DNA of 64,000 bases, from the NCBI GenBank assembly GCA_001643675.2, contig LSRY02000001.1, positions 2,108,001-2,172,000 on the forward strand. Direction: 5' to 3'. This DNA is from Monocercomonoides exilis PA203. Taxonomy: Eukaryota > Protista > Preaxostyla. Under the pieces are notes generated by a model, which searched no databases, was not told the DNA's origin, and worked only from the letters and a program-made list of their open reading frames with translations. Shown piece by piece: positions 3,092-41,098 of this stretch (its first letter is position 1; each line of letters begins with the position of its first letter). The translations under genes and the position numbers were made by a program.

Positions 3092-3122
<31 letters not shown>

Positions 3123-3531: not shown

Positions 3532-4670
3532 TGAAAAAGAATATTAAACAGCTAAAAAAAATAAAAATAAAAAACGAATTTTGATCAAAAAATATGTGTT
3601 GAATAAGAAAGAATTAGAAGGCAATTTGAAGATTACTTGTTTCGAATGACTAATTTATTTTTCCCCCAAATTTTCTTGAATTCTGGATGATATTTGCGAG
3701 ATTTCAATGAAAGATGATTATTTGCACTGAAAAGAAAAAGAAAGAAAGAAAAAGATTTGGATGAACAAGAAAGAGCAAAGATGACAAAATGCATTGAGGA
3801 AGAGAAAAATTAATTTCGCATTGAAAGAAAAAAAAGAAAGAAAACTGACGAAAGATTTGAAGAAAAGACTATTTTCAGAGCATGAGAGAAGAATTTGACA
3901 GAAATGGAAAGACTTCATAAGAAGAAAAGAAGAAAAGGAAAGAAAATGAAGAAAGAAATGAATTTATATCGAAAAATACGCGAAGCGGATGAAATTTCAT
4001 CTTAAGCACGAAATTCTGATAACACATAATATAACATTGTTATTAGCTAAGCTCTTTTAATCAAAATTTTCTTATCTTCTTCTTTTTTTCCCCCTTATCA
4101 TTCAATATTTGTTGTATTAGCTAGTTTATCTCGTTTGATATGTTTCCCTTCTTGAAAGAGAGCTTCATTGCAATTCACAAATTCCAAAGGTTGAATTTTT
4201 GATTTTCTCATTGAAATATCAACAGATTTTCTTTGAGAAGCTCTTCATTGTTATTGCAATGAAGCTTGTTTTTTGTTAACATTACATTCTTTGCTTTGGT
4301 TTTCTTATTCATTTCTTTTTTTTTTCACCTTTATTTTTTCTGATTTGTTCAAAGACGATTTTATTTTATGAAAATTGAGAAATTTCTTTTGTCTCAATTT
4401 GATTGAAATCACTAATTTTTTTTTAATTAACATGTGCTTTTTTCATTGAATGGCTTCCTTTGTTGTCCTTCTGTGTAACTCATCTCTTTTATTCTATTTT
4501 GTGTTCAATCTTTGTTTAAAAGAATTTTCATTTTTCTTTTTTTGAAAAAGAAAGCAAAACCATCATTTGAAAAAGCTCATTAATTTTCGATTTCACACAT
4601 TGGAAAAAAAAATTAAAAGAAAAGAAAAAAAATAATTTTTGAGCAACAAAACAAATAAAATCACATTTCT

Positions 4671-5997
4671 TCAAATATTCACAAAATAATCAGAAATATT
4701 TATTGACATTCCACGATAATATTTGAAGCGAATTGAAATTACTCCATGAAAGCTTGCGATGATATCTTCGTATCCTTCTTCTTCCATCTTTTCGAATACC
4801 TCCATTTTTATTGATTTTCGTCTCGCTTCTTCCATTTCATCTTTCTCCTTTGCTTTCAATCTTTTTGAAATATTCAAAAAGAAATACAAGCAATCAGACA
4901 TAATTTTATCATCCAAAGTTGATTGCTTCATTTCCTCCAAATAGAGATCAATAACTCCACTTTTCAAAAATTCATCAATTTTAACAAATGAATTATTTGT
5001 AACTGTTTGAAATGCATAAATGCATTGATTGCTAATTTCTCTGTGATTATCCTTCGCTGCTCGATATACCTGAACAATGCTATTGATAAATCGAGCAAAT
5101 TCTTCATTCTGCAATTGGCACCCGCCAAAATAAATGCTCGATGTTTCGAGCCATCTCATCAATGCAAATTCTTCTTTCGCTTCTTCTTTGTTCATTTCTT
5201 CTTCTTTCTTCTTCCAGTTCGCACACTTTGTTAGCTCTTCCAATTCTCTTCTTGCTTCTCTTCCAAAATGCAGCTTATTCACAATTATCTCTTCTAAGCT
5301 ATTGTCAGCCCAAAGTCTGGAAACTAAAAACCTCCAAGCAGACTGACAGGCAAGACGGGTGAGGTTGTGATGCTCTTGATGATATTTGATGATCTCTCTG
5401 ATTTCATTCAAAAACAGTTTTGTTTCCATTTCCTATGCAAAAAAGGAGGAAAAAACAATTCAATTACGTCAAAAATGAAAAATAATGACTCAAACGTTAT
5501 ATTGGCTAATGTTGCACAAAGCTAACAAAGCCATTTCCACTTCCTTCTGAGCCTCATCATTTTCCTCTTTTACCGATGCAGCTTTCAAAAGGCAAGGGAC
5601 TATAATTGAAATTATTTCTCCAATTTCACTGGAAATAAGATGCAAAGAAAGATAGCATTCGCAAAGATCAACAAGAAGAGTTTTATCTTTTTCTTCTTCT
5701 TTCTTTTCTTTTTCTTCAATCATCTTTTCAAATCTTCCGTTTAACTGAGATTCTTCAAATCCATAAATCCACCAGCCAAAAAGAACTTTACAATATCCAA
5801 TGTGTTTCAGCAACAACAATGTATTTTCCATTGAAAGTTTCTCTTCTTCGATCATTTCGTTTATTTTGTCGAACGGTTCTTCTCTGAAAATTGATTCGAA
5901 TTCTTCTTCATTCATTCCATCAACTATTTCATTCATTTCTTCAATTTTCTGCTTCTGTTCTGCTTCAGTGAATTGTTCCAACTGTGAAAGTTTCTCT
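4671..5997 (-). CDS. Lineage-specific alpha-helical protein of an expanded family (function unknown), at least 2 exons
   Basis: ORFs 5490..6053 and 4671..5429 join in frame across a 63-nt GT-AG intron 5433..5495 (AAC|gtttgag...catag|GAA). Motifs EKLSMENTLLLLKHIGY and KEVEMALLAL. The 5' exon is uncertain (possible ATGGAATACGAAGAC|gtatgg near 6240). Confidence 0.7.
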
Positions 5998-8337
5998 AAA
6001 AAATGTGAAAAATCAAAAGAGAAAAAAGAAGCATTTATTTTTAAAACCAACAATTTCTTATAACATTTTGCAAACTAATAAATATTTGCTTTTTTGAATG
6101 TGACTGTAAAATCGCAAAATACACCAAAACAAATAATAAATTCGTTTTCGAAATATTCGTGTTTTGTTCAAATTAAAAGAATTAAAAAAAATCAAATCAA
6201 TTATCAAACAACATTAAAGTCCATACGTCTTCGTATTCCATCAATGGTTTTTGCCTCAAAACAAGAAAATATTTGAATAAAATAATCCTCTTTCTTGGAA
6301 AGTAAATAAGGGTGACCAACCTATAATTTTATAAGTGAAGATTTTTGATTGGTGATTTGCCGCAGCAAGAGCATGTTTGAGCTGCTTATGAGCACAACTA
6401 CAGATGCATCCATGCGAGATATAGCAATGCAGAAGAACAGGGATTTTGTTTCCAGATGGAGGAGCGAGTGGCTGTTTGCATCGATTGCTTGCGAAAAGTG
6501 AATTGTGAAGAAAACCAGCATGAAATTAGAACTAGGTTGTATATTGCAAAACATATGATGCAACACCAGATGCAATAATTTGAATGAAAAATAATTTAAG
6601 CAAGATGCAGAAAAAGCGAGGAGAATAACCGAAAGATTGAATTGAACCGCTTGTTCATTTCGAGGGAAATGTGTTTCACTTGGTATTTCTTTTGCTCAGG
6701 ACTTGTTTTGCGTGATTTTTTGAGAGAAGGATGATTTTGTGGAAAAGGAAAGGGAATTGGGGGTTTGGACAATGAAGCGAACAGAACGAAGCACTCAGCT
6801 GGTCTTAACAACAAACGCATTGCCATTTACGCGAAACCCGTTGGAAAGCTATCATTAAAGAAATGGCGTTAAATAAGTCTTTGAAAAAGAGTTGATTTCT
6901 TGTTTATTTGGATAATATTAATTTTCACATGACTTCATTATCGGTTTCATAAAGGATTTTTTGCTTTCGATGATGTTCTTTACCAACCATTTGTTGTCCA
7001 GTTGTCTGTTTTTTTATGTGGCAAGAGGCAATTTTGGAGAGCAAAAAAGCCAGCTGGGCCGATAATTACCAATCCATTGGAGATGGGAAAATAATTCAAG
7101 GCCAAAACAATGGTTTGACTTTTTTTTGTTTCATTCATTTTTCTTTAATGGCGTTATTTGAATGAATTCAAAATGACTATGAACAGGAATGCCATAGAAA
7201 GAAAAGCCTTCTTTTTATTTCGCGAAAGATTCAGAAGTTTTGAGATTATTCTTGTTTGCCTTGCATTCAACGATGATATTCGTGGCTTCTGCCTTCTGTT
7301 TTTCATGCTTCATCATCGATTAACTCATCTTCTTCTTCGCATTCATCAGTATTTCCAAGAATTATTTGATGGAAACAGCCATTTTGATGCTTTAATGGAA
7401 AGATTCACAATTCCTGGTGAAATATGCAGAATTTAAGTTGGAATTGGAGTGCTTCCAAAAAGAGAAGAGAAAAAGGAGGGAAGATGCAGCGATGGACAAG
7501 AAAACAAGGAAAAAATGGTTGTGAACAAGAAAAGTGGATTTGAAGAAGAAGAAGAAGAAGAAGAAAAGAGAAAAGAGAAAGAGGAAATAAGCTATTTTTG
7601 AAAGAGGAAAAAGATATTTTCTTATGAATGAAATGAAAGAAGAAAAGATGTTCCTCATAATGAGGAAAGAAAGCACAGAGAAAGAAAGCAAGAGAGAAGA
7701 AGAAGACTTCTTTGAAATCTGCTTTGAGAAAAGAAGAAGAAAATGTTTGGATTAATAATTCCAGCAAACGCACTAAAAGATGAGCCAAAAGGGGGAATTT
7801 TCATGGAATAAAAGGAAAATATTTATGGAAAGAAGAAGAAGCAGAAAGATAAAACCAAAATAGGGAAAATCAATCAAAGAGAAATATTTCTCCGATGCTG
7901 CTAATTCTCCGGATTTGGTTCAAAAATCTTAAAAAGTGATATTTTGAGGATATAAGCAGAAGAAGGGAAGAATAACAATAAGAAGAAGAAGAAAGATGAG
8001 AAAGAAAAAGTATTTCATCAGATGATCAGAGCGAAGAGGGAGAGAATTTAATTGGGGAAAAGAGAGAATGAGTGAAAAGATTGTCCTGTGAAAGATGAAG
8101 AAAGAAGGGAAAAGATAAATGGAGATGATGAAAAATGAAAAGAGAGGGAAAATTGATTTGAAAAAGAAAAACAAAAAACAATATGGCATTTTTTTCATTC
8201 ATTGAACAACAGCAATATGCTCGGAAAATAACATTTCTTTTTCTTTTCCATATCATAATCATAATCATTCTCTTCTCCTTCGTCTTCGTCTTCTTCTTCT
8301 TCTTCCTTTTCTTCCTCTTCTTCCTCTTCTTCTTCAG

Positions 8338-17229: not shown

Positions 17230-19449
17230 TTGAAACAATGCTTAACCATGTATTTGTTCTTGGTGACAGTCGTGCAAACTATGAAATCTGCGCTAGTGGT
17301 ATATTGGCCATCGTCAACGCAAATAGAGTTGCTGATTTTAGATAGAAAGGTGTGGATATGTTTGAAATTCCTGATTTTTTCATAGCTTCTTTCTCCAGCT
17401 TTCTTATTCCCGAAACAGTCAGTGATACAAACTTTTCTGTGTCGAGAAAAAAATGAGAAGTTCTTCTATTCTTTTTTAGAACAATTGTCCATTACATCTC
17501 GATTGCTGGAACAGGGCAAATGAAAGGTTCTTCTGACAGAAAAGGAACTGCGATCTCAGTTCTTGTATTTGATGTTTTTAGGGAGGTACACAAATAAACA
17601 CCATCCTCTGTTATTCTAGACTGGGACATGTCCATCCTTACCAATTCACTGAACATGCAGGCAGAGAGAAGCTTTGTGAGAGCAATAACTTTCATGGAAA
17701 TATTTTTGAAGGAAAAAGTTTGGTTGGATCCGAGTTCATTGTAGAATTTTGGCAGTATTTTTGGATTCCATATCTCAGGCGCTGTCTTCTTTCTTGCAAT
17801 TTCTGTTTTCTTGAAAGAGCAAAAGAGTGTTCCAATAATTAAGATCTCTCCCAAGGCTGTGTTGAATCAGAGCGATGAGAAAAATGAAACCGCTGCTCTG
17901 ATCATTTGAAGGACAGAAACTTTCACCCCTTTGTTTTTAATGATAATAACACGTCTGCACATATTGCAGTCCACTCTGGTAAGTTGTCTGGTATTTCTGT
18001 GTGTCCGCATAATTTCCATTGTTCAGCAAAACGTGCAAAGCCGAAAAGGTATCCATCCCATGTGGATTGTGCAACGCCTTGTCTGCATTGCTCACCAAGC
18101 TCCTCCGAAATCTATCGTTCCTGTAAGGCTTGTTTCCAAAACTGTTGACCTTTTCTTTTGAGGGGTTCAGAAGAATGAGCCTGAGCTTCCCAGGAGGAAG
18201 ACATGCTCCTGTCTTCTTCATCGATGGACACTCCTTCAACTCCTTGAAGTTTTAATTCAGCTCCCAATTCTAGAAGTTGCAGCCACACAGAAGAACTTCC
18301 CAGTTCTGGACTTTCCAGTTTGGCAGGAGTTGAACAACCTGAGCCTTCTCCAACTGTACTTCCCGAACCACCATCTATATCAGCGGAACAGGATGATGAG
18401 CAAGAACACATTTTGAACTCCAAGGAACTGACTGCCCGTTTTTTGCAATGGGGCTTCAAAAGCCATACCATTTTTCCAGCTAGTGATTGTGATAAGCGCC
18501 AATGCATAGAGTGTTGATCTGACTTTTGTTAATGCGATAATTCCTTAAAGAGCTTCTTCTGTCATTCAATAATCCCCCACCTGCTCAAACCAAGATAGTA
18601 AATCCGCTGTGCTATTCTTCTGTCCCGGAATGTGACGAGCTCTCAACTGAATTTCCATCTTCTCTTTCCATGTCAATATCCTGTGAAGGACAGGACTGAG
18701 ATTATTTCCCTCATTCCACCGATTAGTATTGAATACAGCCGAGCTGTTATCTGACCTCAACAATAGGTTCTTGATCTTGTGATATTTGATTGCTGGCGAG
18801 AAATGTTGAAGAGCCAACTGCACAGCCAACTGTTCCCTGTTGTTTGATGATTTGCTGCGAGCGTGCTTGTTGAATTTTGCATGCCAGTCCAGAATCATGT
18901 TGTTGATGCGAAGTGTTGCTCCCATTGCTAACTCCGATGCATCCGTTGTTAACGTTGCTTTAGGAGATGCATCGTTAACATTGTCGAGACTTGTTCAGGA
19001 TCAATACGCATTGACACTTCTGAATCTCCCTCAACACAAAAACATTCATCTTCGTCATCCCGCTCCATCCATATATCTTGGTATTCTTCTGAAGGAAACG
19101 ATGAAGAGCTATGAGGGAAAGTGACGCATCCTGGAATACGAATCTTTCTGTGCAGAGCCTTCCATTAATGAGGCAAAATCCTTTATTCGGACTGTTTTGG
19201 CTCTTATTGTCTTCACTCTCCATTGACTCAACATCGCTTTGAGGGATCCCAACCTCTCCTCGCACAATTGAACCGTGAATGCTTCCGTGTCCCATGCAAA
19301 CCCCAGAAAAGAGAACTTTCTCCTCGGAGTTAATGAACATTTGTTTTTGTTGACAATAAAGCCCAGATTTTCCAAAAAGGAAGTCATCTCGCTTGCGATT
19401 TTTTTCAACATATTGAATTCTTGATGCAGGAGAATCAGATCGTCCAAGT
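17230..19449 (-). mobile_element. DIRS-type (tyrosine recombinase) retrotransposon, 3' part: RT C-terminus, RNase H, methyltransferase-like domain, YR; decayed
   Basis: RT: LDDLILL..LGFIVNKNKCSLTP..FLGFAWDT. RNase H: TTDAS..GATL, NNREQLAV, SDNSSAV, HIPGQKNSTADLLS. MT-like: PWSSKCVLAHHPVPLI*..LLPNWKVQNW (~18290-18445). YR: IWNP..KVIAL..FSEL..KTS..ICPV and a SATL..FARLS C-terminal box. Confidence 0.85.
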
Positions 19450-22400
19450 GATCCTGTGTGACATGACACGAAAAATTGGAAAAAACTCAAAAATGACAGA
19501 CATGATCTTTTCAATTTGTCATTTTTTTTGTCACTCAAATTAATAAAGTGAAAATAAAAACAATTGCTTATCATTTCGTTTTGATACGACAATTTTCTTT
19601 TTTATGTTTTAATATCTTATTAAACTCGACTTTCCATAAAAATCAAACCAATTTCAAATCTTTTTTTGGAAGTGACAAATTGATCAAATAAATATATTGT
19701 GGTTTTGCCACTTGTCAGATCTATCACTGACAAGTCAGATCTGTCATTTTGTCATTTTTGAAAATACTCCTTCATTTGATCTAAAACCGAAAAGCCATTG
19801 CATTTTATAAATTTGTGAGGGATATTCTCATTTGTCACAAAACGATCTGACAAATTGAAATTTATTTTGTTTTTATTTTATAATAATCTTTTAAATTGTT
19901 CAAATAGTTTTTTGTTTCTAGAATTCTTTATATTGATAAACATTTTTTGTTCATTGTTAATTCGAAATCATAGAGCACTAAATATTTTGCAGATTTACAC
20001 TTTATCGCTTTTATTTTCACTAAAAGTCTTTCCAAACATTTGCAGTTATACAAAAAAGACTTATTTGTGAAGTTTACGAAAATTATAATAAATTAACGTT
20101 TTTTGAACAATTTTTCATCAGCAACGTTAAACAAGTGCCAAACATATATCTTTTGATAATTAAAAATTAATTTTCTTTTTTCGATTTTAGCAAGAGTTTT
20201 TGAAAAAATATTTTTTGAAAAAGAAAATGATAATGCTGAAATCATCGTTCCATGAATAAAATTTTAACATGTTTTTTATTTATAAATAAGCATTCCATCT
20301 TTAAAGCTCCCTCTCTTTATCTTCTTTGTCTTATTTCTTTTGCACAGCAGCATGAACAGAGAATCTCGCAGATCAACAATCAGCTTCTTATGAGGAGAAG
20401 AACAGGCCATTGCATCCACCAGATTCGACATCGATGAGGTGGTTGGACACAGATCCTCCCCACGAACAAATGTTGAATCTGAATCTGTTGTTGAAGTGGA
20501 TGAAATGGATGGTGATGGTGATCTCTTTCGAATCTCTTCTTCTTCTTTCTCATCCACTTTCTCCAGCATCCATTGTGGGATCTTATCTGAATCTCTTCCC
20601 AATATGTATTCAGTCGATCCGCTCTCTGACAGAAGATGCTCAGATGACTCTGAATGTTCCATATTCGTCTCATACACTCTCTTCTTTATCCTCTCTTCAT
20701 TCTTCTTCTCTGCTTCTCTCTCCGCTCTCCTCCAATGTTCCTCATAAGACATTTCCATCGCAATCGTCTCAAACGCCTTTGGATCGTTCTGCACCGCTTC
20801 AGCCACGATCCGCTTCAAGCTTTTGTTCTCGTTCAACTCTTTCAGCTGACGCACATCCAGAAGCTAAGAAAAGCTAGCAGTTGTCATCGATTAGAAATAC
20901 CAGCCAGAGTGGAGGTGCCGGTGTGGCTGCTTCTGCCAAATGGCTCGTTCTGGCAGTCTCTGACCTGTTTTTAAGGACGAGGTGTGGTGTTGCACACTGC
21001 TAGCCATCAACAACGCCAAACATAAAAAAAACGGCGAGATCACATGAAAGGAGTGTGCAAAGGCAAATATGGCCAGCAGGGACGAGCTCACGAGTTTCAT
21101 TCTCCAACTTTCACATATCATCTGCGAACTCGTGTTTTTCAATCACATTCGCGCCATCAATGCTTGTGACGAGAAGGAAGGCGAATAATCTGGGCAGGAG
21201 GAACGAGTGGCCGAGGGTGAGTTCCATGTGGCTGCCATTCTCCTGGTCTGCAACAGACGACAGCATAAGGAAGAAGAATGTAGGGTTGAGGTTGGAGATG
21301 ATTCCGGTCATGATACACTCCTCGTTGTGGATCCACTAAAAAAAGATGTTGAAGTGTAGTCACATTTTATCAAACTCACCAGTGTTAGTGATTCCTCATC
21401 GGAGCTAATGACATTTCGGAATACAGATGGATAGTCACTGGCTAAAGTGTTGCTGCAAGAAAAGGGCCAGTTGCTTACAAACTTTGCTTTGTAGATGTGA
21501 AATGCGTCACAAGAGACAGACGACGCTCCATTATATGCGCTTGTCATTAAGTGATTGCTGATGGAGGTTGTTAAGTTGAACAGAAAAACTGATTATGCAA
21601 TCTCCGCTGCTTCCTTTTATTGCTGTTGGACATTTGGTGGGAGCTCTCCTAAATCGCAAATCTCGTTATCGATTGGCTGCTTTGTTTAAACTTTCAACAC
21701 TTCATTGTTGTGGCTGTTCTTATGCTTCGTAGGTGGAAGATGGAATACATTGCAAGGATGAGGGAAAGTCGCAGAACATACAGAAGATCGGAAGTTTGTT
21801 CGAATAAATTTTTCAATAGAAAGACGAGCCTGAAGAGAAGCAATATGCGCTGCGGCTGTCGCACGGATACAAAAGATACTGAACAACAAAAACACCAGAT
21901 GCTCAGCTTACACGCTTTGTGCCGAGGATCTCTTGAAGCGGCGTATCTTAGAGGTCTCGGCAAACAGATGGACGTATTTTAGTTTCATCTTTGAGAGGGT
22001 GATTTGTTCGGAGGCGAGGAAAAGGAAAGGCAGGAGAGCAAACGCGATGTGCAGGATGGATCCATTATCGAATCTCAAGTGTCCATTCTCGACAGCGATC
22101 AACGAGGAGTTGAGGAGCACTTTGCATGCAGCTGGCGAGGTGGTTGATGAGGAAACTGAAGAAGAAGCAAACCAAACAACGAAGATCTAAAGAAGAACAT
22201 CAGCGTTAAGCATTACACCACTGTTTAAGTGCGAAAAAAATGGGAAAAAGAGGAAGAAGAAACTTTCGTTCTTTATGTTTGAAGAGATTGCGAGGACGGT
22301 GTGTATGCGCTTGATTGTGGAGCAGAGGGGTCCGAGAGCAAATGAAAGAGGCTCGAGCAAGTGGATACTCAATAAGGATGTTCCTCGCATTTTTGTTAAA

Positions 22401-23814
22401 TTTAGGAAAACTTCTTGGTAAAGCTCAACTCAATAACAATAATCTGCCCAACTTCACTGATCCATATTTTTCCTTCATCTGTACTCTTCGCTATATGCAA
22501 TTCGCACTCATTCCAGCTAAATACTCTTCAGTGTCACATTTTTCAAATTCAATTTTGTTGATAATTGTGCAGAAGCAATATCAATTGATAATAGCAGCGA
22601 TTGAATAGTCACAAATTCTGATTGAGCTGTGCCTCCTTCTGCCTTGATCAGCCCATGATCTGTCAATTCTTCTCTCTCATCTCCTTTTTTGGTGAATGAG
22701 CAGTCTTTCACAGTCAACAATCCCTCGCTTGATCCAACATGCATCAAAACATCCACTCCACTTGCGAATGAAGATGGAATCACAAACTTCATCAGTTCGA
22801 AATTGGTGATGCCACAAATCTTCATTGCTGCTCCTTCTGCTCCTTCAAGCGATGAGACACATTCCAATGAGCACATGCTGCTCTCATCCGATTTCACTGA
22901 TATTCCACTCACATCAACACTCTTCCGAAGATACCCTTTTCCAATGATGCTGACATTCCTTTCATTTCCTTCTGGCAATCGATCCAATGAATAATCCATC
23001 GACAGACACGGATAATCTGAGAATCCACACACACACACATCACAACCTTCGCTCCCAATAAATATCTCTGATCCAATTGCTCGCCAGAAATTGACCAGCG
23101 GAATGGCATTCGTTGTGTCACTCCCATCAAAGCCTCTCATAGAATCCAACGAAATATCTGCCAGATGCCCAGTCACATATGGAAGAGAGGTGTTTGTGAT
23201 GCTCTTTGTCAAGTTTGGCGATTCAACAAACAGGTCATTTCCATGTCTGGCAACATTCGGCTTGTCTGCCTCAAAAACAGGGGATGAGATCACAAATGAA
23301 GAAAAGCCATCAATCAGCTTCAGTGCCATCCCTCCCCCAAACCCAATCTTCCGTTCTTCTGCTGGTGCTGTGCATCCTTTCATCTGAAAATAACAACAAC
23401 CAATAAAATATTTCAATCGCTTATGTCATGTGACTTATTGCATTTGTTCGGCTTATAATTAAATATTCGAAAAGTGTGCTGAATGAAACCTTGACTTCAT
23501 CAACTACAAAATAGTAAATATTGTATTGATTTCCAAAGGCAATCTTGCAACTTAAGAGATTTATGACTTTTTGAACCTGCATTCTATCAGCGAATAAAGA
23601 ATTTTTCAAAAACATTTGAATAAAATTTTTAAAAAATGGTTTTTTGAACAAATTAAAAAACATTGAAAAAGAAATATTTAGGAATGACCAAAGATAATTA
23701 TGTTGTTTCCATTTTTTATTTATCAATAAAAATTATTATATAAAATTCACAATGGGTTTTATTGATCAGAAATGACTGACAAAACATTCTCGATTTGTCA
23801 TGTCACACTGGCTT
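19450..23814. mobile_element. Non-autonomous TIR element (Pack-MULE-like) with captured gene fragment
   Basis: Imperfect 19-bp TIRs: left GATCCTGTGTGACATGACA, right reverse complement AAGCCAGTGTGACATGACA. Flanking direct repeat TCGTCCAAGT(G) at 19440 and 23815. TGACA/TGTCA-rich subterminal arm. No transposase inside. Confidence 0.8.
20295..23383 (-). pseudogene. Captured, decayed C-terminal fragment of a beta-helix receptor family member (paralog of 30967..38754)
   Basis: Colinear matches to the 2595-aa protein: GCTAPAEERKIGFGGG...; LLNSSLIAVENGHL vs VLNSTLLSIANGIL; YPSVFRNVISSD vs YPSLRRNIICSD; WRRAEREAEKKNEERIKKRVY...LIVDLRDSLFMLL. Contains stops, frameshifts and deletions. Confidence 0.85.
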
Positions 23815-25300
23815 TCGTCCAAGTGTGATATCACTCTCACATTCCATTTTCTTTTGATTTCTGTTGTGACTTTCCTCATCACTTTTGTGAAACACCTTGG
23901 AGCATCTGTGTATCCAAGCAGCATGCCGTTGAAAGCGTAGTCGATTCCTTCGAATCTGAATGTAACATTCTGTCTGAGTTCCTTCGAAACTGGAATTAGA
24001 TGATAGGCTTGAGACAAATTTATTGTTACCGCGAAATCGTTCTTCATAATCTAACTTTCTTCTGATATTTCGTTCAAGCATTTGAGATTAGATTTCTTGG
24101 TTGCTGCATTCAGAATTCGACAATTCAAAATCTGCTTCCAGGCTCCGGACTTCTTCCGAATGAGGAAAATATTGTTCCGAAAATTCCACCTCCTTTGGAA
24201 AAATCCTGCTTTCAATCCATGTTTCCAGCTTTTTTTATTCTGCCTTTCAAAAATCCATCTTTTGGTTCCTGCTCATAAAAGATGCTTCGTACATGAATGT
24301 CATTTTTTTCCATTCCATCTTTTGCTCTGCGATTGCGCCAATAAGCCTTGACTCAATTTATTTATTAATTTTCCCCCGTCCAATTTTCTCCATTCTTGAT
24401 TATGGTCCAATATCAAACCTCCAATCTTTTCTTCCTCTGGATTCTTTCTCGTCTGTATTTCTTCAAATTCTTCTGCAGTCCAGCGGTTCGTCTTGTTGAG
24501 CTTTTCTTCCAATAGTCTCTCCTTGCTCCTGTGCTTCGAAACATGGACGACAGGGGTCTTCCCTGAAAAAACTTTTTCCCTCTGGAAATTTGAAGCCTCT
24601 GGTTATGTTTTTTAAAATGAACTGCTCTTTGAAGAAGAATATATATACACATGTCCCTGTTGTCTTTTCTGTTCTATCTAAAGTTCTCGCAGTATCTGTT
24701 CATGATGCTGGGTTTGCAGGCCTCCTGATATTTCTGATTCAATCTTTTATGTCGAGCGAAAACTGAATCTTCCTTCGATTCTGCACTTCCTTGCTTCATG
24801 AAGTGCTTGGGATACCATTATAATTACATCCTTGATCATTTGTTCGCAGCTCTCTTCCTCGTCGCTCTTGATTTGAATTGACATTTGTGATGCCTTTTAT
24901 GATGGATATAAAAAATTTTCAACACGTTCGTCTGCTCTATCAAAGGCATCCCGATTCCAAATGGACGTTCTGCTTGATGCTGGAGGAGATGCTTGTGAAA
25001 CCGGGCTGAAATCCTGTTCGTTGTAACAGGTTGCAATGTCCTCTTTCATTGTCTTTGGTATTTGTTAATCAAAAAGGGAAGCTGTTGGTTCGACACCAAA
25101 TATTGATTTGAACAAATCATCAATTGTTCGAGAATCTGGTGCTTCGGGTGAGATGGGTGAAGGCTGTAGCTCTAATTCAGATTGTGAGAAAATATTTGAA
25201 GAAAGATGTTGGGATCTGGGAGCTTCTGCTTTGGAAACTCGTTGGCCCACCGATCTGCATAGCAGAACAAGTCAAAAGTGCAAGTTCAGCTTGTAATGGT
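23815..25300 (-). mobile_element. DIRS-type retrotransposon, 5' part (gag-like remnant plus RT N-terminus)
   Basis: IGGLILDHNQEW; KKSGAWKQILNCRILN; INLSQAYHLIPV..FNGMLLGYTDAPRCFTKVM..VISHLD, which continues at 19449 as DLILL. The upstream boundary and gag identity are approximate. Confidence 0.8.
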
Positions 25301-30966: not shown

Positions 30967-33900
30967 TCACTTCTCTGTCTTCAAAGTTCCTGTGATATCT
31001 GAAGAATTCACACTCGTCATGTGTTCCCCATCTTCTGTTGTCTCCTCCAGATCAATCGCATCTGACATCGTCAGAATTGCTGCTCCTGCAGGAAATCGCT
31101 GGATGAACTCTCGCTTCAGCCCTGCCAAGCTCAGTCTGTCTTCTGGCTGAGCAGACAGGCAAGCTCGGATGATTTCAAAGAAATTCGACTCCTTCACAGC
31201 TGACATGTTCGGTCGTTCGTGATTCACTATCTTCTGCCCTGCCACCTCACCCTCATACTCATCAAATGGAATCTCCAGTGTCAGACACTCCCACAGCATC
31301 ATCCCAATCGAGAATGCCACTGACTCCTTTGTCGCTCCCATCTTCTTGTTCATCTGCAGCTCTGGTGCTTTCCACCTCAGACACTCTTTTCTTTCTTCAT
31401 CTTCATCATCCTCAAACGCTGATGATGGAGGTGGCGACTTGGTGAATCTCTCGCTCATCACTGAAATATCAGAGGAAGATGTGACCATGGTGGAGCTTGA
31501 AGAGATAGATGAACTGTCAGAGTCTGATGAAAAGTCGGAGTGCAAAACAATACAGATCACCATGTGTTCCGAGAACAGCACAATGTGCGGAGTGAGATTG
31601 GCAAGCGATGACAGAGGATTCTCCATTTCATTGAACGAGTGGAGTGCCAGATTCGCCACCCAGAACAGGATCTGTGCAGCTGTCACCTCCCTCTCCTGCA
31701 GAGTGCCTATTGCCATCTCTTTTGTCTTGTTCCTTCCATGAAGCAGCATGAACAGTGAATCCCTCAAATCCACAATCAGTTTCTCATGGGGAGACGAACA
31801 CGCCATCACATCCACCAGATTCGACATCGACGACGTGGTGGGGCACAGTTCTTCTCCCCGAACAAATGTTGAATCTGAATCTGTTGTTGAAGTGGTGGAA
31901 GTGGATGAAATGGATGGTGATGGTGATCTCTTTCGTATCTCTTCCTCTTCAACCTTCTCCAGCATCCATTCAGGGATCTTGTCTGAATCTCTCCCCAAAA
32001 TATACTCAGTGGAACCACTCTCAGAAAGAAGATGCTCTGACGATTCTGAATGTCCCAAGCTTTTTGCATACACCCTCTTCTTTATCCTCTCTTCATTCTT
32101 CTTCTCTGCTTCCCTCTCTGCTCTCCTCCACTGTTCCTCGGGCGATGGCTCCATTGTCACCATCTCAATCAGCTTCGGATCCTTCCTCACTGTGTCATTC
32201 ACAATCTCTCTCAGATCTTTGTTCTCATTCTTTGCCTTTCTCCATCGAACAGCAAACAAAATAAATCCAATCAGAACAATCAAAAACAAAACAACAAATA
32301 TTATGGCAATTATCACAGCCCATGATGATTTTCCTTCTTTTCCTCCTTCAACAACTTTATCATTTCCAGTCTTTGGTTCTGTTTTGTTCTTCACAATCTG
32401 CGGAGAGGTTGCAGCCAATTGCTTTCCAAACAGAATCATCACTGATACCTCTGCTTCATCTGCAATATTTGATATATTTTCTGATGGGATTCTTCCAATC
32501 ACTTCTGTTTCTGAAACAAAACTGTCTTCCTCAAATGGATATGTTTCAACCAACTCCACATCCCCTGTTTTGAATATCAATCTGAATAACAAGTCACAAG
32601 GAAGAAGAAGTGATCCCTTGAATTTCACAACAACATTGCTGCCATTCTCATTCACTGAAACATCTTCCAGTTTGGGAATGAAAAATGGAGATGACCTTTC
32701 TCCTGCTATCCCTCCAAGTGTGCATCCATCATTCAAAATCCAAAATGAAGAATTTTCTTTCAATCCATCTCCTCCTTTCACGCTAGAAATGGTCAATGAT
32801 GCAGAATCTGAACAAATGATGTTTCGACGAAGAGAGGGATATTTTTCAATGAATGGATTGTTGTTCAAAAACTCCCCTTTCTCAATCGTCACATCACCTG
32901 CAGACACTGACAATCCACCTTGTGAAGCATTCGAAACAATCACATCCTTCATCATCAATGAAGAATTCGCTGAGTGAACAAGCGATCCATTCCATTTGCA
33001 AATTTCTTCAAAATTATTATTTCTCTCACTCTCACTCTCTTTTGAAAGAATTCCTTCAAATTCACACATTTGCAACGAAACATCTTTTGCATTGCTTATC
33101 TCCATAATGCTTCCTTTAACAGAGAGAGAATCACAGTTTGAACAGGAACAATTTGAAAGAATTATTTGAGCTGGAGTTGAAGAAGCAGTGATAACAGAAG
33201 CTCCTTTTGAATTCCTCGAACAGTTGTCGAATGAGGAGATTCCAATTGAAATTGAACTCGAAGACGAATCGTTTATCGCAATGACACAACCTTCAGACAA
33301 TTTCACTCCATCTGCAGACACTCCATTAAATACAACACTTCCACATTGTTCAATCTCAAACACATCTGTTGTCGATTCAATTTGTTCCAGTTTCACATTT
33401 GTAATATTTATCTCATCTCCATTTAACAAAAACGAAGGCTTCTGGAATGAAAGCATTGATATTGAGCAGTTATCAACATGAAGAATTCCATTTGCAATGC
33501 TCAACAATGTTGAATTGAGAACAATAGATTCAATGCTTTCTGATTGGCCAACAGATGAAAAATCAACAAATGAAAGAGAAAGCTGTCCACTTGCCTCGTG
33601 AATGATTGAACTGCCTGAATATGAAAATAACTGACCAAAGTTGAATTTCAATCTCTCAATCCGAACATTCTCTGAGGTTGTGATAATACTGCCCTCGTTG
33701 GTTATTGTTGAGTTCAGGTACACCAAAGCAGATGAGGGAGATTGAAGCGAGCGGATGGTCACATCAAGAACATCACACTTCCCAACAATTTCTGTTTGCT
33801 CCAAGATCAGCAGCTGTGAATACAGTGATGGAATGATGTGCTGCACTCCAAAGCTCAATGAGTGGCATGGTGTGTCCAATTCTCCACATTGCTTGCTGTC

Positions 33901-36900
33901 TGCGCGATTCTCTGCAACTGATGATACAAATATCGTCTCGCTCTGGTATCTCATAACCCTCAGCAGCAGATCCTCTTCCCCCGCAAACGAGTCTGTTGTG
34001 CATCCCCATATTGCCTTGTCTTTCACAAACGGTGCTCTGAAATCCAGCAAGAATTGCTCATCAACAATTTGTGTCTCGATTGAGTGGCATCGAATATACA
34101 CATCGCTCCCTCTCAATGCAGAGTTGTCTCGGAACGTGATATTCGACAGCACAAACTTCAGAGGCTTCTCATCCATTGAGGTGCATTCAAGAAACAGCCA
34201 CCCACCTCTTCCTGCGGTCGAGCAGAAGCACTCAGAAATCTTGCAAAATGAGCACTCAAAACTTCCTCCCTCATTCAACTCACAAAACATCCCTCCTCCC
34301 TTTCCACACTTCAACCCTCCGCATCTCTTCATCGTTGTGTTCCGAACCACCATTTTCAATGGCTCATCATTCTCATTTCGAATGATCGAGATGTTTTCTG
34401 TTGTGTCTTGGGTGACTTCTTCAAACAAACTCCACTCAATATTAATGTTTTGTTCTCCTTCATTGCTCCCTCTCTTCTCTCCAGCTGATCCCTTTGATAT
34501 CCTCAATCCACTTGCTCCTTCAAGCTCAATATTCTTCATCGTCAGGTTTTTCGCATTCAGCACCGTTGTTGACAACACAGAAATAACATCCTGCGAAAAG
34601 CTCAACAATTGCATCGTCACCAATTCCAGCACAACTGTCCCTCCATCTGCTTTGATCAGCCCATGATCTGTCAATTCTTCTCTCTCATCTCCTTTTTTGG
34701 TGAATGAGCAGTCTTTCACAGTCAACAATCCCTCGCTTGATCCAACATGCATCAAAACATCCACTCCACTTGCGAATGAAGATGGAAGCACAAACTTGAT
34801 CAGTTCCAAATTGGAAATGCCACAAATCTTCATTGCTGCTTCTTCTGCTCCTTCAAGCGATGAGACACATTCCAATGAGCACATGCTGCTCTCATCCGAT
34901 TTCACTGATATTCCACTCGCATCAACACTCTTCCGAAGATACCCTTTTCCAATGATGCTGACATTCCTTTCATTTCCTTCTGGCAATCGATCCAATGAAT
35001 AATCCATCGACAGACACGGATAATCTGAGAATCCACACACACACACATCACAACCTTCGCTCCCAATAAATATCTCTGATCCAATTGCTCGCCAGAAATT
35101 GACCAGCGGAATGGCATTCGTTGTGTCACTCCCATCAAAGCCTCTCATAGAATCCAACGAAATATCTGCCAGATGCCCAGTCACATATGGAAGAGAGGTG
35201 TTTGTGATGCTCTTTGTCAAGTTTGGCGATTCAACAAACAGGTCATTTCCATGTCTGGCAACATTCGGCTTGTCTGCCTCAAAAACAGGGGATGAGATCA
35301 CAAATGAAGAAAAGCCATCAATCAGCTTCAGTGCCATCCCTCCTCCAAACCCAATCTTCCGTTCTTCTGCTGGTGCTGTGCATCCTGTGAATGTGCATGA
35401 AATAACATTCATTTGAATGCTCCCTTTCAACTGACCATCAATGGCTCCTCCTCTGCTTTCATCAGTGAGCACAGAACATCCATCAAAAACACACTCTTCA
35501 ATATTTATTTCTGCATTTGTATTTTCATCATTGCTGTTGTCAATGCTTACACACCCTCCACTTCCAGCTGCTCTTTCTATTTCTGTGAAATTGCTGTTCG
35601 TCATGTTCAACCACAGTGTGCTCATCAACTCGGTATTTGTTCCACTTCCAGACAATGAAATCAGCGGATTTCCACTCAAAGTGATTGATGAAGCTGAGAA
35701 TTTGTCGATTATCAGGATCCCTGACCCAACAGACAAGAACAGAATTGTCAATTCTGATGATGGATTTTGAAGAGAAAGCGAACATTGAGACAGAGTTATT
35801 GATGATGATGAGGATGAAATGAAAGTGGAGTGAAGAGGCAGGGAAGATGGAAGAGAAAAGATGAGTTTTGATAATTCTGTTTCAACACTGGCTGAAATCA
35901 TCGCTGAATTGGATGTCTCACTTGAATCAGAGACTGTCCAACCACTTTCCCCATCTTTTCCTCGGATTTCATGTTTCTGTTCACCAAATGCCAATTCATC
36001 GCTCATCATAATCATTCCATTCACAACAATTTTCTTTGTTCCTGTTTGTCTTGTGAGGGAGTGCTTCATTGTCAAACAAGGGAATTGGACAATTCCACAG
36101 CGCGAATGATTGGATGCCTCAGAATTGCTCACATATATTTCTTCTGGGGTGGGGAGGAGATAGATGCACAGAGGAATAGCCAAACTCGTGTCTCCATTGT
36201 CATATCCTCTCACTTTCTCAAGAGAATCCAAAGAGGCTTCCACGCATGTGATGTTTTCTGATTTTGCTGTTTCTTCCAGATTGGGTGAAATGACAAAGAT
36301 GTCTCTTCCCCATTTGGCTGTGTTTGTTCCAAATGAAGAGGAGATCAGGAAATTGGGATTTTCAGTCGACAATCGAAGAAGGATTCCTCCCCCAAATCCA
36401 TATGTTGCTGAGCAATAGCACCCATCAAAAGATCCGTCTTTCACTTTCACTTCATTTCCATTCCCAACGCACAGCATCATCGATCCCCCATCAGCTGATG
36501 TTCTGCTTCCACATCCTTCAAAAGTGCAACAATTCACATCAATATTTGCCTTGTCATTCGAAAACGATATCACTGCTGCTCCGCTCGTTGTTCTCTCAAT
36601 CCCATCCAAGGCACACTCTGAAAGTGTCAATGAAATCTCATTTGTCGAAGAAAGCGAAAACAGCGAATTTGTGGAAATCGTCTTTGCCCAGTTCACATGT
36701 TCCATCTGAAACATCCCATTCTGAATGTTTAACAGTTCTGTCGAAAAAGCTGTTTCTGCTGATTGTCCGCTCCCAAAAGATATGTTCAGTTTGCTGACGC
36801 TCATTCCTCCTGCTCCACTTATCTCAAACAGCCTTGACCCACGGTTATTCGGATGAGCCGAGTCATGCACAAGAACAAAGTCTCTGGCAGTCAATGTGCC

Positions 36901-38754
36901 TGTCGAAACCGAAAATAGAGATAACCCAGATGCTTCAAATTCTGTATGGATTGCTGTGCTCATATTGCTTTGACCATAAACAGTGAAACTGTCTGTTCCA
37001 CAATCAAAACTATTTGTTTCGATAATCGTTCCCGAAGATACTTCGACATTGGTCACTAAGTCTGGAATAAGCTGAGACAAACAATTGCTGATCGTGCTGC
37101 ATGGATAAGATTCATAAATTCCACATGCATATGTGTCGTTGCCTTTTGGTTGTGAATCAGTTGATGAGACAAATCTCACGTTTCCAAAATCATTGCGAAG
37201 CCAATCACTCCGATAGGTATATGAATTAGAATTTATACAAACTCTGTATGATGTTTGACCGGTTGAATAGCAACTTGGATCAATATTATTAGATGTTGAA
37301 CCATGAAGCAACATATCGTAGCCACACCTTGTGCCTGTGTTATTGTGGAAAAAACAATAATAAAACAAAACTCTTTTGTTATTTGCATTCAGTAACAAGC
37401 AAACTGCTCCTCCTGAAAGCGAAGAGCAATGATAAAATAAACAATTTGAGAATAAAATTTGAATTGTTCCATCCCAATGAATAATTGCGCCTCCGCAAGA
37501 AGTTGAAGAATTTGACGCTTGACAAAATTTGAAGAATGAGTTAATAACGCATTTTTTTTGTTTTTGAGCAGTTTCTTGATAAAAACCAATTCCTCCTCCG
37601 TCATTGGTAGCAGAACAGTTATTAAATAAACAATTGTCAACCATTGGCTGAACATAAATTGTCTCAAACTGAATCCCTCCTCCACCCCAATCTGAAGAAC
37701 CATATGCAACACATTGATCAAATGTTGAATGATGCACAATGCATTCAGCAATTTTCAAAGCATATATTCCTCCACCTCTTGTAGAAGTTGCTTCGCATCT
37801 TGTGAATGAAGAATTCTCAACTGTAAGAATGGCACTTGCATTGTCATGCACATAAAGAGCGCCTCCTTGTGGTGCTGTGCAATCTTCCCATTCACACAAC
37901 GAAAAGGATTGGCTTTCTGTTGTGTTCAGTTTTTCTTTTTTCTGAAGAGCATTTGTTTCTCTTTTCCCGAAGTTTATTGTTGTGTTTTTGCAGACGAATT
38001 CCTGTGAAGAATATGATCCACTCGATATCCCTCCTTCAAAGACATTCACACACGAATAAATGAGGCTGTTCTCCATTGAACTTCGAAAACATGAATGTTC
38101 CACAAAATGATCGCTATTCTTATCAGATTTCACAGACATGTTCTTAAAGGCACAATTATCAATCTGTTCGCTTTTGCTCTTTCCTGAAACAAGAAAATAG
38201 TCTGAAGCTGAAATAGCTAGGTCTGTCATGATAGAATTGCTCAAAACAGCAACATTTGAATCATCAGATGAAAATATGAGACTGGATGGGTTAAGACTCT
38301 CTTGGGGGATCAAAGTCATGTTTGTGAGGCAGATTGACCCGATAATCAAATGAAAAGGTGATTCCGATTTTTGGTGGGAAACACATGAATCCAACACCAC
38401 ATTCGATTTATCTGTTATTAGAATAAATGGGGAGGAAGAATATTCCACTGCCACATTTTTCAGTCCAACTGAAGCATTGGAAAACCGAAAAAATGAATAA
38501 ATCGCTGTGCATGTTCCTGCCATCCATCTGTTCATTCCTGATGCTTTTCTCTGTTCTGAAAAATAAATGTTATTGCCAGTTGTGAAAAACTGTGCATCAT
38601 TTGAGTTGCCTTGACCAAAATAAATACAGTTATGTTTAAAAGTTGTATTTGAAAAAATACCTTGGTTTTCAAATGTGGCTGTTTCATAGATGAATTGAGA
38701 TTTAAATGTCTCTGCCAGAATCAGACATGCTAAAAGAAACAAATGCACCCTCAT
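30967..38754 (-). CDS. 2595-aa type I membrane receptor: parallel beta-helix (pectin-lyase/PMP-like) ectodomain, TM helix, C-terminal kinase-like domain
   Basis: Single ORF with signal peptide, repeated F..C.A...GGG(A)I motifs and CG....PC.S/T repeats. TM WAVIIAIIFVVLFLIVLIGFILFAV. C-lobe motifs LRWKAPE, FSIGMMLWECLTLEIPF, CLSAQPEDR. Confidence 0.92.
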   Translation of the reverse strand: MRVHLFLLACLILAETFKSQFIYETATFENQGIFSNTTFKHNCIYFGQGNSNDAQFFTTGNNIYFSEQRKASGMNRWMAGTCTAIYSFFRFSNASVGLKNVAVEYSSSPFILITDKSNVVLDSCVSHQKSESPFHLIIGSICLTNMTLIPQESLNPSSLIFSSDDSNVAVLSNSIMTDLAISASDYFLVSGKSKSEQIDNCAFKNMSVKSDKNSDHFVEHSCFRSSMENSLIYSCVNVFEGGISSGSYSSQEFVCKNTTINFGKRETNALQKKEKLNTTESQSFSLCEWEDCTAPQGGALYVHDNASAILTVENSSFTRCEATSTRGGGIYALKIAECIVHHSTFDQCVAYGSSDWGGGGIQFETIYVQPMVDNCLFNNCSATNDGGGIGFYQETAQKQKKCVINSFFKFCQASNSSTSCGGAIIHWDGTIQILFSNCLFYHCSSLSGGAVCLLLNANNKRVLFYYCFFHNNTGTRCGYDMLLHGSTSNNIDPSCYSTGQTSYRVCINSNSYTYRSDWLRNDFGNVRFVSSTDSQPKGNDTYACGIYESYPCSTISNCLSQLIPDLVTNVEVSSGTIIETNSFDCGTDSFTVYGQSNMSTAIHTEFEASGLSLFSVSTGTLTARDFVLVHDSAHPNNRGSRLFEISGAGGMSVSKLNISFGSGQSAETAFSTELLNIQNGMFQMEHVNWAKTISTNSLFSLSSTNEISLTLSECALDGIERTTSGAAVISFSNDKANIDVNCCTFEGCGSRTSADGGSMMLCVGNGNEVKVKDGSFDGCYCSATYGFGGGILLRLSTENPNFLISSSFGTNTAKWGRDIFVISPNLEETAKSENITCVEASLDSLEKVRGYDNGDTSLAIPLCIYLLPTPEEIYVSNSEASNHSRCGIVQFPCLTMKHSLTRQTGTKKIVVNGMIMMSDELAFGEQKHEIRGKDGESGWTVSDSSETSNSAMISASVETELSKLIFSLPSSLPLHSTFISSSSSSITLSQCSLSLQNPSSELTILFLSVGSGILIIDKFSASSITLSGNPLISLSGSGTNTELMSTLWLNMTNSNFTEIERAAGSGGCVSIDNSNDENTNAEINIEECVFDGCSVLTDESRGGAIDGQLKGSIQMNVISCTFTGCTAPAEERKIGFGGGMALKLIDGFSSFVISSPVFEADKPNVARHGNDLFVESPNLTKSITNTSLPYVTGHLADISLDSMRGFDGSDTTNAIPLVNFWRAIGSEIFIGSEGCDVCVCGFSDYPCLSMDYSLDRLPEGNERNVSIIGKGYLRKSVDASGISVKSDESSMCSLECVSSLEGAEEAAMKICGISNLELIKFVLPSSFASGVDVLMHVGSSEGLLTVKDCSFTKKGDEREELTDHGLIKADGGTVVLELVTMQLLSFSQDVISVLSTTVLNAKNLTMKNIELEGASGLRISKGSAGEKRGSNEGEQNINIEWSLFEEVTQDTTENISIIRNENDEPLKMVVRNTTMKRCGGLKCGKGGGMFCELNEGGSFECSFCKISECFCSTAGRGGWLFLECTSMDEKPLKFVLSNITFRDNSALRGSDVYIRCHSIETQIVDEQFLLDFRAPFVKDKAIWGCTTDSFAGEEDLLLRVMRYQSETIFVSSVAENRADSKQCGELDTPCHSLSFGVQHIIPSLYSQLLILEQTEIVGKCDVLDVTIRSLQSPSSALVYLNSTITNEGSIITTSENVRIERLKFNFGQLFSYSGSSIIHEASGQLSLSFVDFSSVGQSESIESIVLNSTLLSIANGILHVDNCSISMLSFQKPSFLLNGDEINITNVKLEQIESTTDVFEIEQCGSVVFNGVSADGVKLSEGCVIAINDSSSSSISIGISSFDNCSRNSKGASVITASSTPAQIILSNCSCSNCDSLSVKGSIMEISNAKDVSLQMCEFEGILSKESESERNNNFEEICKWNGSLVHSANSSLMMKDVIVSNASQGGLSVSAGDVTIEKGEFLNNNPFIEKYPSLRRNIICSDSASLTISSVKGGDGLKENSSFWILNDGCTLGGIAGERSSPFFIPKLEDVSVNENGSNVVVKFKGSLLLPCDLLFRLIFKTGDVELVETYPFEEDSFVSETEVIGRIPSENISNIADEAEVSVMILFGKQLAATSPQIVKNKTEPKTGNDKVVEGGKEGKSSWAVIIAIIFVVLFLIVLIGFILFAVRWRKAKNENKDLREIVNDTVRKDPKLIEMVTMEPSPEEQWRRAEREAEKKNEERIKKRVYAKSLGHSESSEHLLSESGSTEYILGRDSDKIPEWMLEKVEEEEIRKRSPSPSISSTSTTSTTDSDSTFVRGEELCPTTSSMSNLVDVMACSSPHEKLIVDLRDSLFMLLHGRNKTKEMAIGTLQEREVTAAQILFWVANLALHSFNEMENPLSSLANLTPHIVLFSEHMVICIVLHSDFSSDSDSSSISSSSTMVTSSSDISVMSERFTKSPPPSSAFEDDEDEERKECLRWKAPELQMNKKMGATKESVAFSIGMMLWECLTLEIPFDEYEGEVAGQKIVNHERPNMSAVKESNFFEIIRACLSAQPEDRLSLAGLKREFIQRFPAGAAILTMSDAIDLEETTEDGEHMTSVNSSDITGTLKTEK

Positions 38755-41098
38755 ACGGAATTAAAATCAGTTTTGATTTGATAAATTAATTATTATGAGA
38801 ATGATCATTTTTTATTTTTTTAACACATTATTGAAAAAAAGAAAATGTGAGTTCGAAATACTTATTATTGTTTTTGAAACTAATTGGAAAAAGTACTTTG
38901 TCAAGATTCTGCTCTTAAACAGCAGTCCAGAATAAAACTGTTTTTTTCTAAAAAAATATTTAACCATGAATCATTCAATCTTTTGAAAGAAAAATTTTAT
39001 AAACCAAATGCAATTTGGTGCTTGTTTGGCAAATAGGTTTGCATTGTATATTCAATCACTAAAACAGACAATTATTTGTAAATGAATTTTTGAAAAATAG
39101 TTATAAGAAAACGTCAAAACTAACTAAAATTTGTTTCTTCATTGTTTGTTATTCATAAAACATTTATGTTTTGATCCCAATTCGCATGGAAAATATCTGA
39201 TAAACCATAGTCATGTTTTCAGATTGAATTGTTTTTTCAAAACTATTGTTGAACGTGCAATCAAGATTTTCAAGGAATCCAATAATCATACCTTCTGTTG
39301 AGAAATGTTTTTTTCATTAAACTGTGGAATTGGATTCAAATATTTTAATGCAAAAGAGTTAACAGTTTGCATAACCATTTGATTAGACAGTTTTGCGAAC
39401 AAATATGAAAGAAATGGTTTATATTATCATTGGCTGACTGAAAAAAAGATAAAAGGTGGAAGATACTTAAAGAATGCCAATTTATATGTTTGCTCATTTC
39501 TGGTTTGTGAATGATTTTTTTATAATATCATTTGTTCGTTTTGCAGGCATTTGATTTGAGAGATGGATAAACAACATTTGAAAATTGCTTTTCGGAAAGA
39601 AATACTGTTGAGAATTTTTGGCAAAGATGAAGTTTGTAATATTTTTTTTTGTATATTTATTTTTTTTAATTGTTCAGAGTGCATGAACCAAATAAACTGA
39701 ATGAATGACTGACATTCACTTTTCTTGGAAGAATGCCTTGCTCGAACAACTGGTTCATGTGGAAAGAATGTCGAGGCGAAAAGATTGGATTGGTGCTGGA
39801 CGAAATAAATTTTTGATTCAATCAGAAGGAATTGTTAAAATTCCAAATCTCTCTTTTTTCAGAAGGATCAGAAACCTTCTCAAACGAAAATGAGAACACT
39901 TTTTGAAATGGATGATTGGAGAATATGTTACAGAAACGATTGAAAAAGGATGGAATGATGAATTTTTATTGAAGAAAATGTGTATTTTCAAATGAACAAT
40001 AATTGAAAATGACAAACAAATCAAAAGGTTTGCTTTATATATATTTTTTAAAAAAAATAAATTTTTTGTATTTTTATTGTTTTTTTCATGCTTTTCAAAA
40101 AGCGAGGGATTTGATGACTTTGAAGAATAAGAACAGAGGAGAAGGAGAAGGCAAAGAAGAAGAAAAACAAAAATTCAAGAAATAATGAAGATGCATTGCA
40201 TTGGGTTTTTGCGAAGAGTTATTTTGGAAGAAAGATTATTTATGAGAAAGAAGTGAAGGAAAAGCGGAAGATTTTGAATGAAAAGAATGGTTTCCAAATA
40301 TTTCATGTTTTTTGTCAGAGAAAAAAAAAGATGGAGTTGAATACGTGAAAGATTGAGAAGACGTTGTTTCTGAGAACACACAAAAATGGAAGAAGAAGCA
40401 AGATAACGTTTGTTTTTGCTGAATTTCAACCAATTTTATTTGATGTTGCTTTTTATTACAATTCCTCCAAGCTAATCATCTCATTTTGTTAGCTTCAATC
40501 GTTTATTTATTAATTTTGCTTCTTCTTCTTCCTCCCCTTCCTCTTCCTCTTCTTTTGCATCTTCTTCACCAATAAAAATGTAATGTTAACAATTCATTCT
40601 TTTCAACTCTTTGTTAATTCTTCTGCAAGTTTTGTTTTCCATTTCTATTCACAAACACAAAGCTAATTTTCTCATCTGTCAAGAAGAAGCAGCCAAAACA
40701 ATTAGGCAATGCAATGGATATGATATTGACATCCAATCAAAAAAGAAAAAGAAAAAGAAAAAGAAAAAGAAACTTGTTTCAAATAAGTTGTTAATAAATT
40801 TTTGCTCACAAAGGAAACATCTTGTTCATCATTGAAAATTATGCTTCTTAGTGAAATTCCAATTAATTTTTGTGATGAACTGTTCAACAGACACATTTCT
40901 TCCTTTCCCATCCAATTTGATTCATTTTGAAAAATATATAAATAAAAAAATACCTGCCATTAAACAAAACGAAATAAAACTTCATTCTGAAATAATGAAA
41001 AAATAAATAATTTTGATGAGATTTGCAAAAATTACGAAAATTAAATAAAATAAAATAAAATCAGCCAAAAGGTATTCGCAATCACCTCATAATTCTGT

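Follow-up and report, generated by a model that had tools for sequence, protein, structure and literature searches.

Pack-type transposons are non-autonomous elements with terminal inverted repeats (TIRs) that carry host coding DNA. Pack-hATs with 8-nt target-site duplications (TSDs) have been described in maize and rice (PMC8903248). In the frog, a multicopy Pack-hAT (Pack-hAT-N8_XT) is known and single-copy Pack-TIRs mostly take up nearby DNA; gap filling in cis has been described for Pack-TIRs (PMC8277862). A targeted literature search found no description of Pack-type transposons in metamonads, and our literature searches returned neither a description of hAT elements in Monocercomonoides exilis nor a study of conversion in Pack cargo. 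The Nanopore assembly of this organism has protein tyrosine kinases as one of its largest families, and repeats of no assigned class overlap them (PMC8767320).

Here we describe an element in a 64,000-nucleotide stretch of the M. exilis PA203 assembly (the window), which a preliminary description had taken for a Pack-MULE carrying a fragment of a surface receptor. We consider it about 85% probable that this element is a Pack-hAT copy with cargo from a single capture, which was mobilized in trans, inserted into the reverse transcriptase (RT) of a DIRS-like retroelement, and was later gene-converted.

Results

An insertion in a decayed DIRS-like retroelement

The insert in the window is real, and comparison with its siblings fixes the ends of an element of 4,367 bp (Table 1). 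As the preliminary description had recognized, it splits an RT frame at the YxDD motif, with RVT_1 positions 67-149 to the right of the insert and 153-203 to the left, and excision gives ISHLDDLIL. Nesting in a retroelement, probably of the RT/RNase H/recombinase type, was likewise borne out: the RT is clear and the RNase H and Flp_C matches fall below cut-off, a combination consistent with DIRS. Eight uninterrupted paralogs, 81-94% identical to the flanks, contain a single copy of the target. Six of them read ISYLDD, which makes the histidine an independent change, at 23825 and so not within the duplication. Each reading frame of the target copy contains 6-17 stops on either side of the insert, so the retroelement is dead irrespective of the insertion. 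That the insertion fell at the YxDD motif is most likely chance, since the genome has 379 terminal matches and retroelements of this type number in the dozens, so that a landing of this kind would need no special cause.

Contigs from short reads, at single-copy depth, support the assembled sequence in the unique interior of the element. None spans a junction with at least 31 letters on both sides, the best having 29 at the left junction. The empty form of the target is present in the contigs at multi-copy depth and is best explained by the uninterrupted retroelement paralogs. The contigs depart from the assembly at 21136 (T>C in all covering contigs) and by one-base deletions, noted at 19522 and in homopolymers at ~20099-20211 and 23640-23712; these differences are probable assembly errors. 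Elsewhere in the window, open frames at 51762-55313 and 48235-48915 (-) resemble, by eye, transposase-like and ubiquitin-protease-like pieces.

Table 1. Coordinates of the element, its target and the neighboring receptor gene within the window
Feature	Positions	Strand	Remarks
Non-autonomous hAT element	19449..23815	-	Strand from transposase direction in siblings L001/L002
Left TSD, 8 bp, CGTCCAAG	19441..19448	.	Single copy in uninterrupted paralogs
Right TSD	23816..23823	.	8/8 identical to left
Left TIR, 20 bp	19449..19468	+	Base 2 departs from family TA start
Right TIR	23796..23815	-	16/20 vs left TIR; terminal base departs from family TA start
Left arm and AT-rich spacer	19469..20296	.	TGACA/TGTCA motifs, sibling identity
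Receptor cargo, decayed inner fragment of giant receptor-kinase gene	20297..23395	-	Colinear with aa ~1122-2356 of 2,597-codon reference
Conversion tract, 735 bp	22644..23378	-	727/735 to neighboring intact gene, 69% to closest sibling element
Right arm, AT-rich	23396..23795	.	85% to sibling L009
Intact receptor gene, 2,597-codon frame	30970..38760	-	Hydrophobic N-terminus, long ectodomain, TM aa ~2147-2172
Putative tract donor	34652..35386	-	Inside intact receptor gene, 12 kb away
RT part upstream of YxDD	23826..24047	-	RVT_1, E=1.9e-4
RT part downstream of YxDD	19112..19447	-	RVT_1, E=5.8e-7
Decayed RNase H-like (18569-18925) and tyrosine-recombinase-like (17495-17854) regions	17495..18925	-	Weak Pfam, E=0.01-0.08, below curated cut-offs

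Element ends and the sibling family

A direct repeat of 10 bp is present at 19440-19449 and 23815-23824, and the preliminary description had linked the insert to the 9-11-bp TSDs of Pack-MULEs. The repeat exists in the sequence, but the ends of the siblings give a duplication of 8 bp; the apparent 10-mer arises because the first and last bases of the element happen to match the target, one base per side. The family end consensus, read from the termini of the siblings, is TA-NN-CCT-N-TGTGACATGACA, and inverted identity between the two ends stops after ~20 bp, in line with the short imperfect TIRs originally noted. This terminal pattern is not a chance occurrence, as it has 379 matches genome-wide versus 7 for a control pattern. 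We rejected the TA dinucleotide as a TSD, as it is part of the TIR and the 8-bp duplications lie outside it. With terminal bases that differ from the family ends, the window element is probably immobile now.

The description of both arms as rich in TGACA/TGTCA holds for the first 450 bp, which contain 12 such motifs, but not for the last 450 bp, which contain only 4. Those of the left arm would represent subterminal repeats, putatively bound by the transposase. Most siblings match the first ~425 bp of this arm at 77-84% identity, those with a transposase at 84%, and ~17 loci homologous to the arm occur in the genome.

We read ~20 loci of the 379 terminal matches. The search for further elements with the same termini confirmed a multi-copy family with an 8-bp TSD: 13 of 16 members show one (7-8 of 8 positions), as opposed to 0 of 240 mismatched cross pairs. 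The duplication is perfect in the window copy, L002, L004, L007, L011, L013, L014 and three short copies, is 7/8 in three further elements, and is absent from L001, L006 and L009; L016 was omitted from this count because it sits in poly-A. No sibling examined has a 9-11-bp duplication. The three of 16 elements without a TSD count against the Pack-hAT account; each retains both TIRs, and they are candidates for inter-copy recombination or flank deletion. Similar full-length copies lie at separate sites (90-96% identity for L001/L002, 81-89% for L003/L006/L011, 80-85% for the window copy and L009), most with their own TSD, and the cargo has thus moved along with the element.

Other loci differ in structure. 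L016 and L023-L027 (e.g., C1:592143-592634 and C23:115385-115891) form a cargo-free, MITE-like family of 474-507 bp with related TIRs (of the TATACCTCTG type), 8-bp TSDs and 82-88% mutual identity, and many of the 379 terminal matches are probably short elements of this kind. L005 (C91:1389088) and L008 (C91:1161839) are left arms with no right TIR within 9.4 kb; their flanking sequence is identical, and they therefore represent a segmental duplication rather than two insertions. In L012 (C40:663089 onward) the receptor fragment begins 5.3 kb from the left TIR versus the usual 0.9 kb, an offset that suggests a nested insertion. The left arm of the window copy (19449-19873) groups with L003/L006/L005/L008 (95/93), and its cargo plus right arm (20240-23815) are nearest to L009; the window copy may thus be a mosaic of family members, a reading to be taken with caution as the L009 arm is truncated.

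Transposase and superfamily

The window copy encodes no transposase, as first reported: the family's hAT transposase profile found nothing in any of its frames, nor in the other long siblings. Two siblings, L001 (7.1 kb) and L002 (9.8 kb), share both TIRs and the left arm (84%) with the window copy; they code for a hAT transposase, now broken, with D167, D229, C263xxH266, R316W317 and a SEASCERLFS segment. L002 has a stop before the dimerization domain, and L001 has several; such broken proteins were searched in pieces or, in scripted searches, with X at the stops. D167, D229, C263, H266, R316 and W317 are kept in an alignment with 26 homologs. The resulting profile matched only Hermes in the PDB (E=1.6e-12). 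In Pfam, nine of the 27 transposase homologs match PF05699 and one matches DUF659 (PF04937), and none matches a MULE family; the C-terminal piece of L001 also matches PF05699 above cut-off. Pfam gave no match for the L002 core alone and none to a BED finger in the family transposase, and a homologous-protein search with the L002 transposase returned nothing, while a representative-sequence search returned 134 matches. A hAT-like RW motif seen by eye on the plus strand at ~21850-22000 was discarded, as it has no profile match and the region is the reverse of the receptor cargo.

These results place the element in a different superfamily from the Mutator class first proposed, and a MULE transposase between the same ends was not found among the loci read; in its place are the hAT transposases of L001 and L002. 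MULEs can have TSDs of 8 or 9 bp and share CxxH and W with hAT, and long TIRs are a feature of MULEs (PMC5225508). The hAT assignment consequently rests on the transposase and the short TIR and not on the TSD alone. A Pack-MULE with a 9-11-bp TSD would account for the 10-bp direct repeat and would share these residues, but given siblings with exactly 8 bp, TIRs of 20 bp and a cognate transposase that matches Hermes, PF05699 and DUF659, we regard it as barely credible.

No intact transposase was found between these ends among the loci read. The nearest intact transposases (42%) have no family TIRs in the flanks compared, and none was seen within 1.4-1.6-kb flanks of the transposases at C1:837k, C9/C32 and C59. 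Genome-wide, the hAT transposase core has at least 150 matching loci, open frames of 870-1,016 aa are present at many of them, and the loci at C9:557k and C32:128k are 97-99% identical in the compared stretches.

The receptor cargo

About 3.1 kb of host receptor sequence does lie inside the element, and the Pack-type reading of it has held up: the element belongs to a multi-copy TIR family, is non-autonomous and has host receptor DNA aboard. The cargo runs from the late ectodomain to the juxtamembrane region and is colinear with one gene family, with a very diverged middle. Both the signal peptide and the kinase domain are missing, the transmembrane segment is degenerate, and the main frame contains 14 internal stops. 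The intact gene at 30970-38760 has a PK_Tyr_Ser-Thr match (E=2.7e-8).

The same stretch of the gene, in the same orientation, is present in 11 transposase-less elements including the window copy, mostly from aa 1043-1166 to aa 2348-2377; L003 and L006 lack the C-terminal half. L001 and L002 carry aa 2181-2349 of the receptor reference. The long siblings thus all carry host receptor sequence, either the same stretch or part of it, and host homology stops at an identical point in 10 of 10 aligned elements. Since ten elements share one junction, the cargo would have been captured once and then copied, and a single old capture followed by transposition fits the compared sequences best.

If instead empty hATs had each been filled by cis gap repair from nearby receptor genes, L013 and L014, with arms 82-90% alike and cargo below 60%, would find a ready explanation, as would the local best match to part of the window cargo. 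That match, however, is a colinear replacement within older cargo, and repeated capture does not account for the common junction or for the recurrence of one gene stretch throughout the long members. Neither L011 nor L013 has a close or local donor, their best matches (83%) being on other contigs, so that a rule of cis donors is unsupported. Repeated capture is decidedly unlikely.

In L001 and L002, the transposase is separated from the receptor fragment by a low-complexity segment rich in Ser and Glu (~1450-6400 in oriented L002), a possible second cargo, and L002 is ~2.6 kb longer than L001. Contig C1 has a cluster of at least 13 close receptor paralogs between 1.78 and 2.63 Mb (85-91% to query 22400-23390).

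A gene-conversion tract in the cargo

Part of the cargo matches the intact receptor gene in the window at 99% identity; the match is gapless and its edges are sharp. The cargo is 86% identical to L009 ahead of this tract, 69% within it and 83% beyond it. In a tree of the region to its left, L009 is the partner of the window copy (99/99); in a tree of the tract itself the partner is the local gene (100/99), nested in a clade of host paralogs that are 91-96% alike. Sixteen tract sites are common only to the window copy and the local gene among four sampled paralogs. This pattern argues for a recent conversion, with the tree topology pointing to transfer from gene to element. At all eight tract differences the element, and not the gene, has the base of most or all paralogs, and a later change in the gene or a closer unsampled donor must therefore be assumed. 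Six of the eight fall within 54 bp (~34788-34841) where the intact gene departs from the paralogs, possibly a later micro-conversion of that gene. Three of the eight sites match L009 and are uninformative on flow from element to gene.

The tract could also be an artefact of assembly or polishing between nearby paralogs. The element shows no private change anywhere in the 735 bp, ten rounds of Pilon polishing went into the assembly (PMC8767320), and the tract edges have no bridging contigs under our 31-letter rule. Single-copy contigs (21460-22673 and 23349-23717 in X1, 23350-23629 in X2) nevertheless enter the tract for ~30 bp at both edges without mismatch, a reach that falls short of that rule and is what 31-mer unitigs should show where a genuine repeat begins. 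A rise from 69% to 99% through polishing is unlikely, and eight differences remain; we judge an artefact highly improbable.

Gene conversion may have acted on the family before. The cargo patches of L003, L006 and L011 drop to 59-71% in elements with arms mostly 80-94% alike, which on identity levels suggests older tracts.

Exchange between cargo and a live gene might also mean that the family maintains its cargo as a mobile donor cassette, from which variants pass into expressed receptor genes, the more so as several family cargoes keep open ectodomain frames of 200-300 codons. The readable direction, however, is from the gene into the element; in this copy the open stretch and the fresh tract are largely the same, and the remainder is full of stops. 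RNA run X5 (contigs from another study) covers only multi-copy parts, a weak indication in the same sense. A donor cassette is therefore very unlikely. The earlier suggestion that Pack-type elements disperse and shuffle this surface-protein family finds support in its first half, for dead fragments, but not in its second: the cargo is a single stretch, inherited from a single gene family, with 14 internal stops and devoid of signal peptide and kinase domain, and the only readable exchange runs into the transposon.

Discussion

The Pack-hAT history that we prefer would have begun with an ancestral hAT that captured an inner piece of a receptor-kinase gene once, as the common junction implies. 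Its derivatives, without the transposase or with little of the cargo left, would then have been mobilized in trans by a cut-and-paste mechanism that made 8-bp TSDs; that elements were copied together with their cargo is directly visible, and the transposase was presumably supplied from elsewhere. One copy entered the RT of a multi-copy DIRS-like retroelement and then decayed. Much later, non-allelic gene conversion from an intact paralog 12 kb away would have replaced 735 bp of its cargo, which would be a passive pseudogene partaking in the ordinary sequence exchange of the receptor family.

Our analysis corrects the class of the element to hAT, not Mutator, and documents Pack-type transposons in a metamonad. 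Receptor-carrying hATs help to explain the unclassified repeats that overlap kinase genes in the M. exilis genome (PMC8767320). The sharp tract, which links a dead cargo to a live gene, is a clean, directional case of non-allelic conversion in the largest gene family. It is conceivable, if unlikely, that transposon-borne receptor fragments form a mobile pool in M. exilis with two-way tract exchange with intact genes, such that hAT transposition helps to spread and diversify the family; the locus described here would then record such an exchange shortly after the event.

Like hAT elements such as Ac/Ds and Hermes, the family has an 8-bp TSD, short TIRs, subterminal repeats, short MITE-like derivatives and, in siblings rather than in the window copy, a DD-CxxH-RW-E transposase with PF05699. 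Unlike them, its transposase is divergent, with a match to Hermes that is clear only by profile and no Pfam BED finger, and the window copy is non-autonomous with altered terminal bases. With Pack-MULEs it shares a host-gene fragment between TIRs but not the TSD length, TIR length or transposase class. The Pack-hAT and other Pack-TYPE elements of maize, rice and frog are likewise non-autonomous TIR elements that contain host coding DNA and multiplied through later transposition. Here, in contrast, the host is a metamonad, the whole element family carries one fixed stretch from the largest gene family in the genome, transposase-bearing members included, and the cargo has been patched by conversion from host paralogs.

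In the VSG pseudogene archives of trypanosomes, silent fragments of surface genes exchange tracts with intact genes. The M. exilis cargo resembles these in consisting of silent fragments that exchange tracts with intact genes; unlike the archives, it has no known expression site, donor role or switching machinery, and the exchange seen here runs into the silent copy.
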